From Mytilus californianus (Eukaryota), in the NCBI RefSeq assembly GCF_021869535.1, contig NW_026262581.1, positions 112,778,001-112,842,000 of the forward strand: a stretch of DNA of 64,000 nucleotides, given 5' to 3'. Under the pieces are notes generated by a model. That model did no database searches, was not told the origin of the DNA, and saw nothing but the letters and a program-made list of their open reading frames with translations. The translations under genes were made by a program, and so were the position numbers. Below are positions 1 through 22,058 of this stretch, piece by piece (position 1 is the first letter of the stretch; each line of letters begins with the position of its first letter).

Positions 1-1566
1 TAATCTTCAAAACATCACTTGAAACTGGCATAACACCAACAGACTGGAAACATGCCAACGTGGCACCAGTATTTAAAAAAGGGGAAAAATACAAGCCAGT
101 AAATTACTGCCCAATATCATTGACATGTATTTCCTGTAAACTTATGGAGCATATCATCACCAAACACATCATCAACCACCTTGAAAAGAACAATATACTG
201 TATGACCTCCAGCATGGCTTCCGTCAGTCACGATCATGTGAAACCCAACTCATTTCATTCCAAGAGCTTGCAGCAAATAACAAAAACAACACACAAACAG
301 ACTTAATTATAATGGACTTTGCCAAAGCATTTGACAAAGTCCCTCATAAAAGACTTCTCTATAAACTGAACTATTATGGTATTCAAAATGAAACACTAAA
401 CTGGGTCTCTGCCTTCTTAAATGAAAGAACACAAACAGTTGTCCTGGATGGAGAGTCATCTGACCTGGCTCCAGTCACCTCAGGTGTCCCTCAAGGCACA
501 GTTCTGGGCCCAGTATTATTCTTGGTATACATCAACGACCTACCAGAATACTTACAATCCAGTAAGCTCAGACTGTTTGCCGATGACAGTATCATCTACA
601 AAACCATCAAATCTCAAAGTAACAGTGATGAACTCCAGTTAGATTTAGATGCAGCTGCTAGGTGGGAACAAGACTGGTTGATGGCTTTCCATCCAGACAA
701 ATGCACAGTCCTTACAGTATCACAAAAGAAAAAACAGTTTAAACATGACTATATCCTTCACAATCACAAACTAGAACTAGTCTCTTCAGTTAAATATCTG
801 GGCATTACACTACAAGCAAACTTAATATGGTCAAAACATACAGACAACATCATAGCTAATGGAAACAAATCTTTGGGCTTCTTAAAAAGAAATTTAAAAA
901 CATCATGTCAGAACATCAAAACCCAGGCATATCTGGCACTAGTTAGTCCTAAGCTTGAATATTCATGTTCAGTATGGGACCCTCACACAGCAGAACAAAC
1001 CTCTAAAATTGAGATGGTCCAAAGACGAGCTGCCAGATATGTCTGTAACAGGTACCATAACATCAGTAGTCCTACAGACATGATAAACTCACTAAACTGG
1101 CCCATGCTACAAGAAAGAAGACTACGCACAAAATTGATAATGTTCTACAAAATAGTACATCAAATCGTAGCAATCCCATCTGCTATTCTCATACCATCAG
1201 ACAGTAGAACCCGCAAAAATCATAGTTTCACTTTCAGACACATTTCTACCAAAAGAGATACATATAAATTTTCATTTTTTCCGTACACCATTACTCAGTG
1301 GAATTTACTACCAGTCCACACAGTCGCTGTAACCTCAGTCGACACTTTCAGAGAACAGCTTACACCAACTGTTCTCCACAAATTCATTTAACTCATTATT
1401 AGCCTATGTACATAGTTTTAATCACAATCTAAAATTCTTACGATGCACTTCAAATTCATTTTCAATTATTTTTGTGTTTTTGTAAATATATATATAGGCC
1501 ATGCAGCGCAAAACAGTATATAATCTTCAGATAATGAAGGACTACTGAAAACCGAAAGAAGAAGAA
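1..1566 (+). mobile_element. Non-LTR retrotransposon (LINE) 3' end with (GAA)n tail
   Basis: RT ORF, about 160 nt of 3'UTR, then GAAAGAAGAAGAA at 1554-1566. Confidence 0.88.
3..1391 (+). CDS. LINE ORF2 reverse transcriptase, CR1/L2-type; 5' part lies outside the window
   Basis: The frame is open from position 3 (IFKTSLETGITPTDWKHANVAP), so the track start at 60 is only a GTG. RT motifs QHGFR, DFAKAFDKV, GVPQGTVLGP, FADD and KYLG are present, with a C-terminal FSFFPYTITQWNLLP. No stop before 1389. Confidence 0.93.
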   Translation: MFKTSLETGITPTDWKHANVAPVFKKGEKYKPVNYCPISLTCISCKLMEHIITKHIINHLEKNNILYDLQHGFRQSRSCETQLISFQELAANNKNNTQTDLIIMDFAKAFDKVPHKRLLYKLNYYGIQNETLNWVSAFLNERTQTVVLDGESSDLAPVTSGVPQGTVLGPVLFLVYINDLPEYLQSSKLRLFADDSIIYKTIKSQSNSDELQLDLDAAARWEQDWLMAFHPDKCTVLTVSQKKKQFKHDYILHNHKLELVSSVKYLGITLQANLIWSKHTDNIIANGNKSLGFLKRNLKTSCQNIKTQAYLALVSPKLEYSCSVWDPHTAEQTSKIEMVQRRAARYVCNRYHNISSPTDMINSLNWPMLQERRLRTKLIMFYKIVHQIVAIPSAILIPSDSRTRKNHSFTFRHISTKRDTYKFSFFPYTITQWNLLPVHTVAVTSVDTFREQLTPTVLHKFI

Positions 1567-3769: not shown

Positions 3770-4222
3770 ATATAGATCTCCGATTTCGTTATACATCGGG
3801 TATCCCAATCCGAAACGGCGGAGGAATCCAAATCACGAGGAGCAATTAATGAAAAGTTTGTAACGCTATGTAAGTAAAATCTGGATCCGATTCCCATGGA
3901 GGAATTGTGCTCCGTGGGAATCAGCTCCAGATTTTACCTACCCACCGTTACAATTTTCATTAATTGCTCCCTGGGATTCGGATCCCTTTGCGGATTTCGG
4001 ATCGGGATACCCGGTGTGGTTATGCTCATATCGACGAGTTGCTATGTAAGTAAAATCTGGATCCGATTCCCATGGAGGAATTGTGCTCCGTGGGAATCAG
4101 CTCCAGATTTTACCTACCCACCGTTACAATTTTCATTAATTGCTCCCTGGGATTCGGATCCCTTTGCGGATTTCGGATCGGGATACCCGGTGTGGTTATG
4201 CTCATATCGACGAGTTGCTATA
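3770..4222. repeat. Long foldback (about 250 bp hairpin) plus exact 176-bp tandem duplication
   Basis: Nested arms surround loop GAATTGTG (~3901-3908): GATTCCCATGGAG/CTCCGTGGGAATC, GTAAGTAAAATCTGGA/TCCAGATTTTACCTAC, and an outer ~75-bp diverged arm pair. 3865-4040 is repeated identically at 4041-4216. Confidence 0.85.
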
Positions 4223-4892
4223 CATGTATATCTAAATTTTAATCAGTTTTCAAATTAGTCAACAAAGAAGAAATTGTCATTAAATTTCATATAAGATTTA
4301 AATGGCCTTGAATGATGATTTTTACCTTTTTCAAGTAGTGCTGGATTATAGTCTAGTTTACTGTGTGGGAAAGTTGTCGTTGTCATGAGTAGATGCACAT
4401 AGATGCAAGGGAATGGCATTTTCATAAGAACTTGTCCTCACATTTTATTTCGAAATTCTCTAATTTAGCTCTCTTTCTAGTCATCAGTAGAATTCTTACT
4501 ATTATAGTGCTTTTGTGATGTAAAATCTTTACAAAACATGTGAATTTTGCATAATCTCAGGGGCGGATTTATATTTTTTCCTTCAAAATCCTCATCCGTA
4601 CCCGAAGCAGTAGCTTGATAAAAAGTTGCGTGACCTATAGTTTTTATCATATTTCGTAAAATACGATATAACTGCAAATTTTCGAAAAGTATAAACAAAT
4701 CTATAATTGGTGTTAATACTACCTGCCTTATGAATTAAACGCTCATATTATTTTTATCTTCCTAACATTATATTGCTAAGATACCTTCTATCCGCGTTTT
4801 GTATTAGGATAAACTAGGTCTTGCAGACATATGCAGTTTATGGAGTTAAGTTAAGAATAGTCCAGTCCAATCGATGTTCAACAATATTTAGA

Positions 4893-4934
4893 CTCTTTCT
4901 GAAATTTGTGTGTGGCTCTAAAAAGAGCCTTTTT
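4893..4934 (-). terminator. Histone-type 3' processing signal: stem-loop plus histone downstream element
   Basis: Minus strand AAAAA-GGCTCT-TTTT-AGAGCC-ACACA-CAAATTTC-AGAAAGAG. The stem-loop is at 4914-4929 and the HDE-like purine box at 4893-4900. Confidence 0.8.
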
Positions 4935-4969
4935 AATTATCACTGCATGGGACAATAAGTGTGCACTCA

Positions 4970-5248
4970 TCAACATGTATGCTGATAAATGCGATTTTTC
5001 AATTCTTCTGTTTCTTTTGCCTTTCTCAGGGCAAATTCGTAATAAACTTCACGGAGACCATCAGCGACAGCAATCCGAAGTCTTAGCGTGTATCGGAATG
5101 AACGGTTTCCTTCTTGTTTTGCTTTTGTGTATCTCTGATCAAGGTTGGAAAGTCGATGGTTAAGATGAACAATTTGCTGACAGGCTCTGCGAAAGTGGCG
5201 CTCGGTCACTATAAGGAGTTCTTTAACAGCAGTAGCTTCCATGGTCAT
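4970..5248 (-). CDS. Intronless orphan 92-aa protein, predicted helical hairpin
   Basis: ATG in good context (aaccATGaccATGg), TGA at 4970-4972 and helix-like amphipathic composition. A TATA/Inr lies upstream and a histone stem-loop 40 nt after the stop. I cannot assign a family. Confidence 0.7.
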   Translation of the reverse strand: MTMEATAVKELLIVTERHFRRACQQIVHLNHRLSNLDQRYTKAKQEGNRSFRYTLRLRIAVADGLREVYYEFALRKAKETEELKNRIYQHTC

Positions 5249-5290
5249 GGTTACAGTCTTCTACTATGTCGCTTAAGACATAAAATTATA

Positions 5291-5326
5291 GAATGAAATT
5301 GTCACAGAGAAACATTGTGTTTTATA
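5291..5326 (-). promoter_or_regulatory. TATA box and initiator for the 92-aa ORF
   Basis: Minus-strand TATAAAA at 5326-5320 and TCATTC at 5296-5291 (A at 5294). The first T of TATA is 32 nt upstream of the putative +1, and the 5'UTR is about 46 nt. Confidence 0.65.
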
Positions 5327-6107
5327 GTCAATTTTGATAAGAATCATCAAAGAAGAATTATTTTACCTTTGATTATGTTGAAAAATATTTAAGATATGCT
5401 TTTGTTCTTTCTTATTTCAATCCTCAGGAATGTTTGGGTAATTTTTTATCTTTGTAAAAAAAATCCCTATTATAATACTTAGCTACCTGTAAGCACATGG
5501 CTTCATTTTCACACCCTTTGATGTGTTTATACCTTAATTTGTTAATGATATTGGCTTCAATTCGACGCCGTCACAAATTATATTGCAATTGTTATATTGT
5601 AACATTTGAATATTGAGCTAAGAAATAACCCAAGTTCTCAAAAAAGTAAGAATTTAGAATTTTTCAATCAGGATTTAACTATGTTTAAAATTACCATGAT
5701 TACTCACGATCATAATAATAATAAACTTATCACGACAATCAATCCTATAAGATAACTTGCATTATGATCAAATTGATAATTAGAAACATATTTTGCTATC
5801 CAAATATGCTCAATAGCATGGTATAACCAAAATTATTTATTAATTGGTTTAAATTCACAAATTTCCTGTAAAATTATATGAAATTCATTAACTTGGCAGT
5901 TATGTTATGAAAAGTAATAAATGAATTATTTATAAACAGATCATTAAATTATGAATGCATAAAGATTGTCCAAAACCGATATTTTGGCAAGTTTTCAATA
6001 TCTATCCCCAAAAATGTAGAAAAGATCGTCGTAAACAGGCACAAAACCAAAATTCCGTTAAAAGTAAAGCTATGTGTTGTCTTTCGGATAAAAATTAGTT
6101 AATTATG

Positions 6108-7763: not shown

Positions 7764-9566
7764 AACTAGAAGCTCTCAAGAGCCTGTGTCGCTCACCTGT
7801 ATCTACTGTGGTTTTGGAAATCATGTAAAATACGGTTAAAATCATATAGATACCCTAATAATGATAGAGGCCAAGTTTGGTTTAATTTGGCCCAGTAGTT
7901 AAATTAAAAGCAGAAGATTTTTGAAAATATTTACAAAAATTACCAATAAATCGCAGAAAATAACTTTAAAGGACAATAACTCCAAGAAGATGTCAATTTC
8001 CAATTGGTCATGTTAACTAATTTGTAGATCTTTCTTTGCTTGATATTTTTGCTGTTTACAGTATATATCTCAATCTATAACGATATTCAAGATAATTAAC
8101 AAAAAATAAAAAATTTCCTTTCCTCCGCTCCAAAATTTATTTCACCCAGGGCCTGTATAATGCTGAAAATGCCTTTATTAAAATGTTTTTATGGAACACC
8201 CTTCAAAAAAATTTGGGCAGGTCTGGGGGGGGGGGGGGGGGGTTGGTATTAACCCAATATAAGTATGCTGAAAGAAAAAAAAGAATAATGGTTTAAAGAA
8301 AAAGTAACACTGAATAATTCTGAAAATGGAACATATCAAGGAGAAATTATTAGAACCCCCCCCCCCCCCGAAAAAATTGGAACCACTGGAAATAAAATCA
8401 AGTCATCCCATTGTAGTCTTACAATAGTTACTGAAGACCCCTTATCATTATTTAAATTAGTTTTCAAGTTGTGACCATTTGAAATTGTTTTTTACATTTT
8501 TCCCATAGACTTCTATAGTAAACCCCTATGTTCTATTTTTACCAATGGGGTCATGTTGGTTGTAGGGCAGGGTCATCGGGTACATTTTTCAATCAAGATA
8601 CTCTAATAATTATTGTGGCTAAGTTTAATTCCATTTGGTCAAGTAGATTAAGATGAGAAGATTTTTGTAAAAGATTCAAAAAAATTACGATAAATAGTGA
8701 AAAATTGACTTTAAAGGGCAATAACTGCTTAAGGGGTCAATTGACAATATTGGTCATGTTGACCTGATGAACATTTTAACCCCGTTAGATTTGCTGTAAA
8801 TGAATATAAGAAGTTGTGGCATGAGTGCCAATGAGACAAATCTCCATCCAAGTCACAATTTGTAAAAGTAAATCAAATGCTTTAGTTTTAGAGATATAAG
8901 CCAAAAACTGCATTTTACCTCTATGTTCAATTTTTAGCCATAGCGGCCATCGGATACATTTTTTAAACTAGATACCCTTATAATGATTTAAGCCAAGTAT
9001 GGTTTAACTTGGTCCAGTAATTTCAGAGAAGATTTTTGTAAAAGATTACAAAAATTTACAAAAAATTGTGAAAAATTGACAGTTTTGGTTATGTTGACCT
9101 ATTTGTAGATCTTACTTTGCTGAACATTTTTGCTGTTAACAGTTTATCTCTATCTATTTTAATATTCAAGATATAAACCAAAAACTGAAAAATTTCCTTA
9201 AAATTACCAATTCAGGGCCAGCAACCCAACAACGGGTCGTCTAAAAATTCCAGGGCAGACAGTTCTTGACCTGATATACATTTTTACCCCTGTCAGATTT
9301 GCTCTAAATGCTTTAGTTTCAGAGATATAAGCCAAAAACTGCATTTTACCCCCATGTTCCATTTTTAGCCATGGAGGCCATGTTGGTTGATTGGCGGGGT
9401 CATTTGATACATTTTTAAACTAGATACCCTAAGGATGATTTAGGCCAAGTTTAGTTTTATTTAGCCCAGTAGTTCAGAGGAGAAGATTTTTGTAAAAGTT
9501 AACGGACGACGTATGCCAAGTGATGATGATAAAAGCTCACTTGACCCTTTTGGGTCAGGTGAGCAA
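7764..9566 (-). mobile_element. Helentron/HINE-like element family A
   Basis: 5' palindrome GCTCACCTGACCCAAAAGGGTCAAGTGAGC (minus strand, ~9535-9564) and 3' GGTGAGCGACACAGGCTCTTGAGAGCTTCTAGT. Homologous to 25825-29037. Confidence 0.8.
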
Positions 9567-11214
9567 AAAAAGGGGGGAATAAGGCAACATTAGGAGTGGA
9601 ACATGTAAAAAGTCTTGCATTAACCATATATGTATTTCCATAAAGGGGGGGGGGCTAGGGCCCCTTCCCCTCTCTAAATCCGCATCTGACAAGGATATTA
9701 AATCTTATTTTAATGACGGTAAATTTTGTTATATTGATAATTTTCAAGATATTGTACAAATATTTTTTATTTTACAGGTTGTTCATTTCATTTTACCTTT
9801 TAGCTTTTTGTACAAACTACTTCGTTATTTAGCAGGCCTTTAGTGAGCATAAAATAAAAAAAAAACATGAACATTACAACTATGTTTATGTATTATGAAG
9901 AATAAAAACATTAATCGATGTTTTTCCCTTATTTTTAGGATTTGTTAATGGTTCTCATTGAAATTATATTTATAAAGATTCTTGAGAAACGATAATACTG
10001 ATTACTACCAAACACTTAAGTTTCTTTGTTTAGTTTCCTAAATAGTTGAAAGGCGGATATATTTCAGAAAATGAGGTGGAGCTTCAGCCATAGAATAACA
10101 TCAAAATAAACATGTTGTACCATAGCTAAGCTCCGCCTACTTTCCTTTAAGATTCTAGTTGGGTTCGTGTTTAGTTATCAAAGTATGGTACAACATCAAA
10201 TTGAAGATAATAGACCATGGTTTTCCATCAACACTCTTTTTAAGCAAATTATTTCATTAAAACATCAAAAGAAAAATGCAATTTATATTACATTATTAAA
10301 TTTACTTCCGACAGTATGTTGTTTTGGTTAAAAATGTCCTGCTTAATCATTTTGAATAAAAAATACTCATAATTTGTCAAAATTGCAATTTTAATGGGCA
10401 ACTTTTAAGCATTTATAATTTGATATGTTCAGAAATACGACATAATGTTGTTACAACCGTAAAGTATACACATTTTTTATTGTTTCACTGTAATTTTTGT
10501 AAAGATTTGAACGCTATGACTTAAAAATTTTGTTGACAAAGAGGGGTCGCTATTCAAATGCATCATCAGCTCTCAAGCATTTAAAAAAAGTTTTCAAGTT
10601 TGTACCTTTTCTAAAATTATGCTATTAGCATCACTTTTTTCACAGTGTATTGGTTTAAAATGTAAATTACTGGTTTACATTCTATATGTTGTAATTACCA
10701 CTACCAACTACATGTAGAATTAAAAACGTAAACGGTCCGTGAACATCTTTTTTCAGACCTAAATGTTCCCACACACATGTAAATATACTGACAAGATTCA
10801 AAATAATAGCACTTGTGTAAACATTGTACTCTGAAAACTACCCCAGTATAAAGGAGTTGGGCATAGAGAACGTGGAAAACCGATCAACAAGCATACATCA
10901 ATGATACAAAGTAAGTTTTCGGACAATCATATAACTAATGTTCCATTGAAATTTCAACCAAAGAAGAAGAACCTGACCTTCTTTCAAACCTTGGTATATA
11001 TGGACCTGCACACCTTACAATAATTCTTTAGATTGAGTTTGAATATCCCTTTGGTATTTTTCGCCTCTTTTTTTTTTATAGTTGATCTACGTCTTTACGG
11101 TACTTGTGAAACTGAGCTTATAAGGACCTTATAGATTAAACTAAGCCGACCTAGTACTAATATTACTTGCAAAAAAATAATACCTTTTTCCGGAAAGCCC
11201 AGCTTTCATCATGA

Positions 11215-21000: not shown

Positions 21001-22058
21001 AATCGTGCAAACTTGCTTATACAAGTAAATATTACTCACATCTTAAATAAAAATGACTTGTATAAAAATGTTATCCCTGACTGACAGATGTGTAGTTAGT
21101 CTATGGTCTGCAAATTGTCAAAAAATATCATAAGGACTTATGAGCTACATGTAAGGTTCCTCAGCTACATTTTCAATTCAACATGCTTTCAAAAATTAAT
21201 TTGCGGATGTAAATAGTAAATAAGATTGTACAATGTATCTATAAAATAAACACACAATGGAAATTTTTGTCTGTTTCTTCAATAAATCAAGGCGAAAAAA
21301 ACTGTCAAAATAGATGCATCATGTTAGTATTTCAAACATAATTTTTGAAAAGATATTACAAAAATAAATCATTATTTCCAAATTTGGTAGTAATTAGTTC
21401 AACGAATGATTTTTGAGGTATCTTAATTATTTTGTCAAATCATTATTCTTACGAAGACCAAATCATAAAATCGCTCAGGACACAAAATCCAAAAAGGGAT
21501 TAGAATTACTGTAGACATACCTGAGGCTGAGGCAGGTGTTGGTACATTACTTTTGCACACTGCCTTATGTCCTGTTTTCCAGTCTGCTTCTTGATGTTCT
21601 TTACTACAGTATGTTGCACTCTGGCATCTTGCACATCTTTTCGACCCTCTAAGTCCGCACACTACACACAAATCCTGATAAAATTTTGCAGAGGGTCCAT
21701 CGGTCTCTTTCTTTGGTGGCTCTGGACTGTAAAAGTCATTGTTGCGAGGCAATTGGGATCTTAATGCACAAAAGTTTTCATTGTTATTCTTACTACAGCA
21801 TACGACATTTCTACAAACAAAAACAAACAACGCTCTGTGAAAAGCTTTCGGACTCTCTTCAAACGGACAGTACACTTGCATCAAAAATGATAGTATCTTT
21901 CCACATTTTGAACATTCAAGATCTTTGTTTGAAGGTATCGGTGAAAGAGATAGCCAAGCTGGTTTTCCTCCAACTTTACTTGGGAAATGAAAGCTACATA
22001 GCAAATGAGAGTCTGTTCTTTCTACAAAACCCAATTCCACGTTGTTGCTGTCCACCAT
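15047..22058 (-). CDS. PDCD2: Programmed cell death protein 2 (MYND finger, uS5 chaperone), 362 aa, 4 exons
   Basis: Exons 22058-21521, 17071-16797, 16067-15954 and 15208-15047, all GT-AG with consistent phases 1,0,0 (1089 nt). Motifs SKVGGKPAWL, MQVYCP, MYND CVVC..CARC..YCSKEHQ..W..GHK..C, QVLRY, FEFQIMPQLL and DWGTLCVYTC. Confidence 0.95.
16402..16591. mobile_element. TA-flanked ~190-bp MITE (family of 54989-55185), diverged
   Basis: TA-CTGCAAAGCAACTATTTTT ... AAAATAAATTGGTTTACAG-TA. Confidence 0.55.
17836..17995. mobile_element. 160-bp MITE with CAG..CTG ends (hAT-like)
   Basis: CAGTGGCGGATCCAG / CTAAATCCGCCTCTG, flanked by GTCCG and GTCTG (possible 5-bp TSD). End fragments occur at ~4558, ~9675 and ~12120. 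Confidence 0.7.
18236..18308. repeat. 18-bp minisatellite, about 4 copies
   Basis: GAGTACTCAAATTGCACC units. Confidence 0.9.
18600..19872. repeat. ~173-bp satellite array, about 7.5 units, in PDCD2 intron 1
   Basis: The anchor GTAATGC occurs at 18654, 18829, 19002, 19174, 19347, 19515, 19688 and 19861 (spacings 175,173,172,173,168,173,173). Confidence 0.95.
19878..20275 (+). pseudogene. Penelope-like retroelement RT fragment with one frameshift
   Basis: Hand translation gives FLLDNIFVCYGDSVYLQVIGIPMGTYCAPLIVDLFLCCYE, a frameshift near 20095, then FRYLDDILALNNDDF..IYPSELTLN..FLDLDI. These are PLE RT motifs. The ORF track missed it. Confidence 0.85.
20300..20848 (-). mobile_element. HINE/Pearl-like element (family F) with (GTCC/GTCT)n and ~185-bp internal repeats
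   Basis: Terminal palindrome TATACGTCCCGT-AA-ACGGGCATATA at ~20817-20842, (GGAC/AGAC)n at 20760-20805 and repeated AAATCCCCCTTTTTGTAATGAATAAAACCCC. Confidence 0.7.

Follow-up and report, generated by a model that had tools for sequence, protein, structure and literature searches.

A histone-type 3'-processing signal apparently maintained on a family of non-histone genes in mussels

Results

A compact gene unit with a histone-type stem-loop

The window, that is, the whole stretch of DNA analysed here, comprises 64,000 nucleotides of the Mytilus californianus genome (NCBI RefSeq assembly GCF_021869535.1, contig NW_026262581.1, positions 112,778,001 to 112,842,000). On its minus strand, positions 5326-4879 form, as far as the sequence can be read, a compact, TATA/initiator-driven, intronless gene unit (Table 1). 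The TATA box lies 32 nt upstream of the initiator A, and most of the family promoters that were read, together with the histone genes of locus L023 described below, have TCATTC, TCAGAA or TCAGT 25-32 nt after the TATA box. A 5' UTR of about 46 nt separates the predicted +1 from a 92-aa ORF whose homologues begin at the second ATG (5242), and the predicted mature RNA is about 386 nt long, from 5294 to approximately 4909.

Table 1. Features of the 64-kb window and stem-loops at homologous loci. Positions are those of the window; for homologous loci the source of the sequence is given instead.
Feature	Position or source	Strand	Evidence or remark
TATA box TATAAAA	5326-5320	-	Sequence read; similarly placed TATA-like box in homologues
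Initiator-like TCATTC	5296-5291	-	Predicted +1 at A 5294, an unmapped prediction
Intronless ORF, 92 aa	5248-4970	-	ORF list; stop TGA 4972-4970
3' UTR spacer, 40 nt	4969-4930	-	Unconserved save for its A-rich 3' end, the stem-loop 5' flank
ATTAAA	4937-4932	-	Adjoins stem; in A-rich flank
Histone-type stem-loop GGCTCT-TTTT-AGAGCC	4929-4914	-	Rfam RF00032
Stem, 5' arm GGCTCT	4929-4924	-	
Loop TTTT	4923-4920	-	
Stem, 3' arm AGAGCC	4919-4914	-	
3' flank ACACA	4913-4909	-	Sequence read
HDE block ATTTCAGAAAGAGTCTAAATATTGTTG	4905-4879	-	Conserved columns, likeness to histone flanks
Purine core AGAAAGAG	4900-4893	-	Starts at 14th nt after stem
443-aa ORF	60-1391	+	RVT_1 reverse-transcriptase domain, E 1.5e-31
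207-aa ORF	21435-22058	-	MYND zinc finger, E 3.6e-11
Perfect 181-bp tandem duplication within palindromic repeat	3793-4221		3865-4045 = 4041-4221
Dispersed repeat family	7847-9570 and 25822-28957		Copies 73-84% identical
Stem-loop, L001	M. galloprovincialis UYJE01007034.1		RF00032 30.1 bits
Stem-loop, L002	ENA assembly		RF00032 39.9 bits, over gathering
Stem-loop, L003	ENA assembly		RF00032 29.2 bits
Stem-loop, L006	ENA assembly		RF00032 31.7 bits
Stem-loop, L008	Metagenome contig		RF00032 33.6 bits
Stem-loop, L009, two copies	Metagenome contig		RF00032 32.4 and 32.9 bits
Stem-loop, L018	Logan assembly		RF00032 32.0 bits
Stem-loop, L019/L020 (same gene as L021, L022)	ENA assemblies		RF00032 27.3 bits
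Stem-loop, L030	Second M. galloprovincialis paralogue, UYJE01006865.1		RF00032 39.6 bits, over gathering

The stem-loop is preceded directly by AAAAA, at the end of the spacer. All the elements named in the original prediction (ORF, 40-nt spacer, AAAAA-GGCTCT-TTTT-AGAGCC-ACACA, purine core and ATTAAA) are read on the minus strand as described there, and scoring with the Rfam Histone3 model (RF00032), which it had proposed, gave a match of 37.2 bits (E 3e-7; gathering score 34) at 4934-4890 (minus strand), the sole Rfam match in the 64-kb window. The hairpin has the form of the SLBP signal: a 6-bp stem starting with GG, a 4-nt loop whose first and third positions are U, and A-rich and AC flanks. 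A single occurrence of AAAGGYYYTTTTNARRRCCAC was counted in the window, and none in 100 dinucleotide-preserving shuffles even when one mismatch is allowed; the folding energy of the RNA hairpin is -10.1 kcal/mol (z = -5.2). The ATTAAA that adjoins the stem was rejected as a conserved poly(A) signal because L001 alone shares it with the window in that position, and it seems to be a by-product of the A-rich flank.

Within the window the gene unit is single-copy, and homology to all other loci is confined to 4874-5248. No histone gene, ORF remnant or second Histone3 match was found in the 64 kb. Elsewhere in the window lie a retroelement fragment (the 443-aa ORF), 3.5 kb from the gene and connected to it by no repeat; a MYND zinc-finger ORF that is probably a host-gene exon; and a tandem duplication and dispersed repeats that are likely to be MITE- or satellite-like elements.

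The product is a predicted two-helix hairpin from a large uncharacterized family

What does the ORF encode? No Pfam family was matched by the 92-aa ORF at E<=1, nor was any histone, and its AlphaFold2 (AF2) model is an antiparallel two-helix hairpin of high confidence (pLDDT 94.5) with helices at residues 3-46 and 49-91. As modeled, the product is a basic two-helix hairpin and not a histone fold, and the histone fold or H15 domain that a replication-dependent histone gene encodes was not found in it. Comparisons of structure did little to suggest a function. Foldseek against the PDB returned generic hairpins alone (p85 iSH2, ING4, ESCRT-III/PspA; all E>0.2), Swiss-Prot structure comparison gave an uninformative SerRS arm and ING5 (E>0.1), and the AFDB fold search found uncharacterized mollusc proteins and nothing else; an ESM atlas search with the protein (scores of 0.82 or less) and a comparison of the family profile with the PDB (BAP31 at E 0.09) were likewise uninformative.

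A word-indexed search with the protein returned a hypothetical protein of Mytilus galloprovincialis (63% identity) together with two ENA-assembly proteins. A profile of the four sequences then found 798 cluster representatives at E<=1e-3, 317 of them at E<=1e-10. By this similarity the ORF belongs to a large uncharacterized lophotrochozoan protein family, with members in the bivalves Mytilus edulis, M. galloprovincialis, Pinctada, Ostrea, Ruditapes, Mercenaria, Mya, Mactra and Dreissena, the gastropods Patella, Littorina and Nucella, and the annelid tubeworm Lamellibrachia. All named members are annotated as uncharacterized. Three metagenomic entries (P0255, P0274 and P0267) bear the JGI names 'mitochondrial fission protein ELM1' and 'glyoxalase superfamily protein PhnB', which look like spurious automatic annotation of eukaryotic host genes in metagenomes. 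The core motif of the family is ER.FR..C.QIV...RY..AK...SFRY.LRLR.AV..G.RN.YY.YA (elsewhere with ER.FR.aC), and the window protein has this core in common with, for example, Ostrea edulis LOC125679921, Nucella lapillus KAL8578164.1, Patella caerulea SNE40_012698 and Lamellibrachia satsuma LSAT2_008627. The Patella and Lamellibrachia members examined are single-exon, like the window gene, whereas the Ostrea protein is multi-exon and carries a SWIM zinc finger. Many members, unlike the window protein, have long acidic tails and are net acidic; the proteins encoded by stem-loop-carrying genes are net basic (pI 8.9-10.1), and annelid-type proteins encoded by genes lacking it are strongly acidic through their long tails.

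Pairwise dN/dS is 0.135 between the window and L018, 0.136 between the window and L001 and 0.077 between L008 and L009 (0.08-0.17 overall), and dS is 1.5-2.0 in those pairs, so that synonymous sites are saturated. From these ratios the ORF is evidently real and its protein under purifying selection. The description of the gene as non-histone stands on the absence of a Pfam or histone match, the hairpin model and membership of a large uncharacterized family under purifying selection. The original prediction had also allowed that the unit might be either a host gene or a selfish element that had co-opted the histone pathway; of these the host gene is favored, being single-copy and free of repeat overlap, with conserved paralogues.

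Could a mobile or selfish element nevertheless have acquired a histone 3' end and carry this gene as cargo? The size of the family (798 cluster representatives), the presence of one member (P0006) in tandem on a single contig, and the reverse-transcriptase ORF in the window would fit such an origin. However, the unit has neither a second copy nor any repeat overlap (4400-5400) in the window, its similarity to other loci extends no further than 4874-5248, and no transposase, reverse transcriptase, TIR or LTR is associated with the gene at any locus examined. Selection on the protein is strongly purifying, divergence is orthologue-like, and the tandem-array copies (L004/L005) are among the members that lack a stem-loop. 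Neither the dispersed copies nor the terminal repeats or element enzymes expected of a transposable element were found, and transposon cargo was rejected as an explanation; we regard it as very improbable. The P0006 array itself (L004/L005, ENA ERZ25067879 ctg67492) repeats about every 6.3 kb, lies between low-complexity C/T-rich and G-rich repeats, and either lost its stem-loop or never had one.

The stem-loop is conserved downstream of homologous genes

DNA of homologues was fetched and every locus scanned with Rfam, and the matches lie on the sense strand after the homologous stop codon (Table 1). In sequence terms, the stem-loop is kept in ten independent homologous loci. The window, L002 and L030 score over the RF00032 gathering threshold, and the other homologues score 27-34 bits, below it. 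The distance from the stop codon is 24-119 nt (24-48 nt, with 119 nt in L030). In the two M. galloprovincialis paralogues the gene occupies 4838-5110 of L001, with the stem at 5159, and 2501-2830 of L030, with the stem at 2950.

When the copies are aligned by their stems, per-column identity is 70-100% in the A-rich 5' flank, stem, loop (U-rich) and AC 3' flank, and equally in a block of about 27 nt at a fixed distance from the stem with the consensus ATTTCAAAAAGAGTCTAAATTG; column identity over the first 24 nt after the stop codon is about 40% (9 loci). In 11 family copies all stem cells are paired (66/66), and the loops are TTTT, TTTA or TTTC. Base pair 4 shows a two-sided compensatory change (U-A in 9 copies, C-G in 2), and base pair 3 is C-G in 4 copies and U.G in 7. 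On the opposite strand the U.G wobble would read as C.A, a mismatch, so the constraint appears to act on the sense-strand RNA. With synonymous sites saturated, the conservation cannot be put down to recent common ancestry, and on this comparative evidence the cassette is selectively maintained.

Two of the homologous loci contain further structures. In L009 the stem-loop and HDE are duplicated in tandem about 255 nt apart (645-698 and 900-953) downstream of one family gene, an arrangement that gives two successive histone-type processing signals. In L019 a near-perfect hairpin of about 67 nt (1480-1570) has sub-threshold matches to several miRNA families on both strands, and is probably a MITE-type palindrome and not a miRNA.

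The stem-loop is restricted to part of the family

The presence of the stem-loop was mapped on a protein tree of 22 loci. It is clustered, requiring a minimum of 3 changes, a number as low as which was reached in none of 500 label shuffles. The window's short subfamily comprises six loci, all six with the stem-loop (support 100/99). The further carriers are L008/L009 (proteins of about 110 aa with an acidic tail), L030 in a third subgroup, and L006. In mussel-type genomes the cassette thus occurs in no fewer than three paralogous subgroups.

No stem-loop was found in the fetched flanks of L004/L005, the tandem-array copies close to L008/L009; of the multi-exon Ostrea gene L007; of the Patella gene L031, in which AATAAA lies 54 nt after the stop codon; of the Lamellibrachia gene L032 and its metagenomic relatives L010, L012 and L013, the last with a weak 21-bit Histone3 match; or of L011 and L014-L017. 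The gastropod, annelid and oyster members examined are unlike the window gene in this respect. The hairpin is present in ten loci, two M. galloprovincialis paralogues among them, and missing from the oyster gene and some others. The cassette appears from this distribution to be restricted to mussel-type members and the taxon of L006, and the family as a whole does not have it. The existence of relatives without it (L004/L005 and the gastropods and annelids examined) implies that the protein does not need the stem-loop.

The downstream element resembles that of bivalve histone genes

A pattern scan for the stem-loop and downstream element in a bacterial/archaeal genome collection matched low-coverage host-contaminant contigs in symbiont 'MAGs', and a pattern scan of viral_contigs gave 0 matches. 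The contigs CBDDTI010000007.1 and CBDDTI010000488.1 (the L023-L029 group) and FXLX01000038.1 and FXLX01000338.1 (L026-L027) are animal histone clusters deposited in bacterial MAGs, labeled as an unnamed 'bacterium' bin and as an 'uncultured SUP05 cluster bacterium isolate CRYPA' bin, and represent host DNA contamination. L023 and its relatives contain a tandem H1-H3-H4-H2B-H2A quintet of about 6.6 kb, and L026 and L027, from the SUP05 symbiont bin, contain H2B, H2A, H3 and H4. Every histone gene on those contigs has a Histone3 match, of 34-41 bits, and these mussel-type host-contaminant contigs served as our histone comparison set.

The histone 3' flanks of L026/L027 read ACC..(T)TTTTTCAAAAAGAATCTnAATTGTTGTT, and the family genes have this element too, equally far from the stem. 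At 22-32 of 36 positions their flanks are identical to H2A/H2B/H3/H4 flanks, where the 95th percentile of the null is 17-18. Against the L026 H3 flank, the window matches at 25 of the 36 positions after the stem (null 95th percentile 17), L018 and L008 at 29 each and L009 at 32; L008 equals that flank across the first 25 nt after the stem. L006 has a downstream sequence of its own (17/36, no match), is GC-richer and evidently comes from a different organism, and its mismatch is what a different U7 in that organism would lead one to expect. By blastn, the window's stem-loop and HDE segment is found in L008 and L009 at 84-86% identity, and the window's ORF DNA gives a weak match in L009 (71% over 86 nt) and none in L008. 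Co-variation of the element with lineage, L001 and the L023 cluster having TTTCGAAAAG and the others TTTCAAAAAG, was considered and rejected, since L030 has TTCAAAAAGAG.

Judged by this likeness, the purine-rich downstream element is an authentic histone HDE. The claim of a canonical SLBP/U7 cassette is upheld by the Rfam score over gathering, the ten homologous loci and the match to bivalve histone genes.

A match this close to histone flanks could in principle be produced by recent copying, and some family members lack the stem-loop altogether; might the hairpin then be a passive relic, a chance match or a gene-conversion copy of a histone 3' end without function for the ORF? Chance expectation is approximately zero by both Rfam score and shuffles, and the window contains no histone ORF remnant or second Histone3 match. 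In 10 loci, which come from several species and represent three paralogue groups, and whose dS is saturated, the stem-loop stands in the same position and on the same strand after a homologous ORF. Moreover, conversion of the whole segment is unlikely, since most family stems (GGYTCT) and their 5' flanks are unlike those of histone genes: the stems are GGYTCT/AGAGCC in 9 of 11 copies, and those found in histone genes are GGCCCT, GGCCTT and GGCCGT. These differences indicate that the family cassette has been maintained independently and not refreshed by histone-gene conversion, and we find a functionless hairpin scarcely credible. Seven of the 11 family stems combine a U.G wobble at the third base pair with A-U at the fourth; they are weaker than those found in the histone genes, and their affinity for SLBP could be lower.

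Discussion

How would the pre-mRNA of such a gene be processed? In histone pre-mRNA, SLBP binds the stem-loop, U7 pairs with the HDE, and CPSF73 cuts 4-5 nt after the stem, after an A. We think it probable that the window holds a complete and maintained histone-type 3'-processing signal on a non-histone gene, and that this signal is handled by the SLBP/U7 pathway. SLBP would bind the stem-loop at 4929-4914, and the 5' end of U7 snRNA would pair with the downstream element at 4905-4879, as in histone genes; the 5' end of mussel U7 is predicted to be complementary to TTTCAAAAAGAGTCT / TTTCAAAAAGAGTCTAAATTG. CPSF73 associated with the U7 snRNP would cut about 5 nt after the stem, cleavage after approximately 4909 being predicted from the histone rule. 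This would yield an mRNA of about 386 nt that lacks a poly(A) tail and is treated like histone mRNAs in export, translation and decay. SLBP and U7 binding, the cleavage site, the absence of poly(A) and the cell-cycle or maternal coupling are all what we infer for this gene.

Because pairing with U7 snRNA is, to our knowledge, the sole role of the HDE, its conservation is the strongest argument that the family pre-mRNAs would be cleaved by the histone machinery. No U7 (RF00066) match was found in the window or in any fetched locus, and the U7 survey that we found covers vertebrates (PMC5054213). Pairing of the HDE with U7 is supported by proxy, through its identity with histone HDEs.

The cassette might instead be functional and conserved while the main 3' ends are polyadenylated, the stem-loop then being an internal SLBP regulatory element or an alternative or backup site. 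Backup or alternative use of a stem-loop is a feature of some histone variants and of the polyadenylated histone mRNAs of differentiated cells. Polyadenylated mRNAs can come from replication-dependent histone genes themselves (PMC5100578), and Mytilus H1 'orphon' genes are reported to have a polyadenylation signal (PMC6210712). Within the family, ATTAAA adjoins the stem in the window and L001, and AATAAA or ATTAAA occurs downstream of the stem-loop in L018, L019, L002 and L009, where dual processing is possible; predicted family proteins are also included in sets of gene models, for instance in the annotation of M. galloprovincialis. However, an internal SLBP site would have no use for the HDE, whose conservation equals that of the stem and whose spacing from it is constant. 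Poly(A) signals vary among loci in both position and presence, and the window has no AATAAA or ATTAAA within 400 nt after the stop codon other than the one upstream of the stem. We consider predominant polyadenylation unlikely, and processing by the SLBP/U7 pathway remains our preferred reading.

Comparison with replication-dependent histone genes brings out both the likeness and its limits. Like them, the window gene has a 6-bp GG stem, a 4-nt U-rich loop, A-rich 5' and AC-rich 3' flanks, a stem close to the stop codon, and an HDE at fixed spacing that matches the bivalve histone HDE. It is also intronless, with a TATA box and TCATTC-type initiator, a predicted mRNA of about 400 nt and a net basic product. 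Unlike them, it encodes a modeled two-helix hairpin with no histone-fold Pfam match and lies, as far as the 64-kb window extends, outside a histone cluster, and the family stems are mostly GGYTCT with U.G where histone stems found are GGCCCT. Nor do the promoters have 8-mers in common. No 8-mer was found in at least 4 of 9 family promoters together with at least 3 of 7 histone promoters, for which reason shared S-phase promoter elements were rejected, and the octamer ATTTGCAT occurs in the L030 promoter alone. Histone variants and orphons with dual signals offer a second comparison, as a stem-loop is combined with AAUAAA-type hexamers in the window, L001, L018 and L019, and alternative processing is conceivable in the hexamer-bearing loci; those are histone genes, however, and in the family the hexamers are unconserved and the HDE is conserved.

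From its presence in at least three paralogous subgroups, the arrangement looks like a case in which a non-histone gene family of one lineage recruited the pathway that forms histone 3' ends. We see about an even chance that mussels, and perhaps other bivalves, possess a multi-paralogue family of SLBP/U7-client mRNAs that are non-polyadenylated and either track histone mRNAs (S phase) or are maternally stored.

As far as we know, replication-dependent histone mRNAs are the sole cellular mRNAs with a stem-loop 3' end. SLBP CLIP in human cells has reportedly revealed no credible non-histone client. A 2026 evolutionary survey covered only the regions downstream of histone genes, with no genome-wide detection in metazoans, and in the full-text literature (the survey of Lopez & Samuelsson 2008 excluded) we found no description of a non-histone family with the histone cassette. 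In the light of the sequence comparisons, the mRNAs of the mussel family may be the first cellular mRNAs outside the histones to be produced by the histone-specific SLBP/U7 pathway. If so, they would constitute the first natural exception to the histone-only rule of 3'-end formation, and a family in which stem-loop and HDE have been kept through saturating divergence would be a natural second class of client, showing the histone 3'-end pathway to be open to recruitment by other genes. This would also suggest that the basic hairpin protein is needed at a dose tied to histone supply, for example as a chromatin-assembly or DNA/RNA-binding partner, and the family would give a handle on further needs for histone-like S-phase or maternal control. 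The mussel stem-loop paralogues and the gastropod and annelid poly(A) orthologues would together make a comparative system for the effect of a histone 3' end on an mRNA, and the cassette would be the first functional clue for a widespread uncharacterized lophotrochozoan family.
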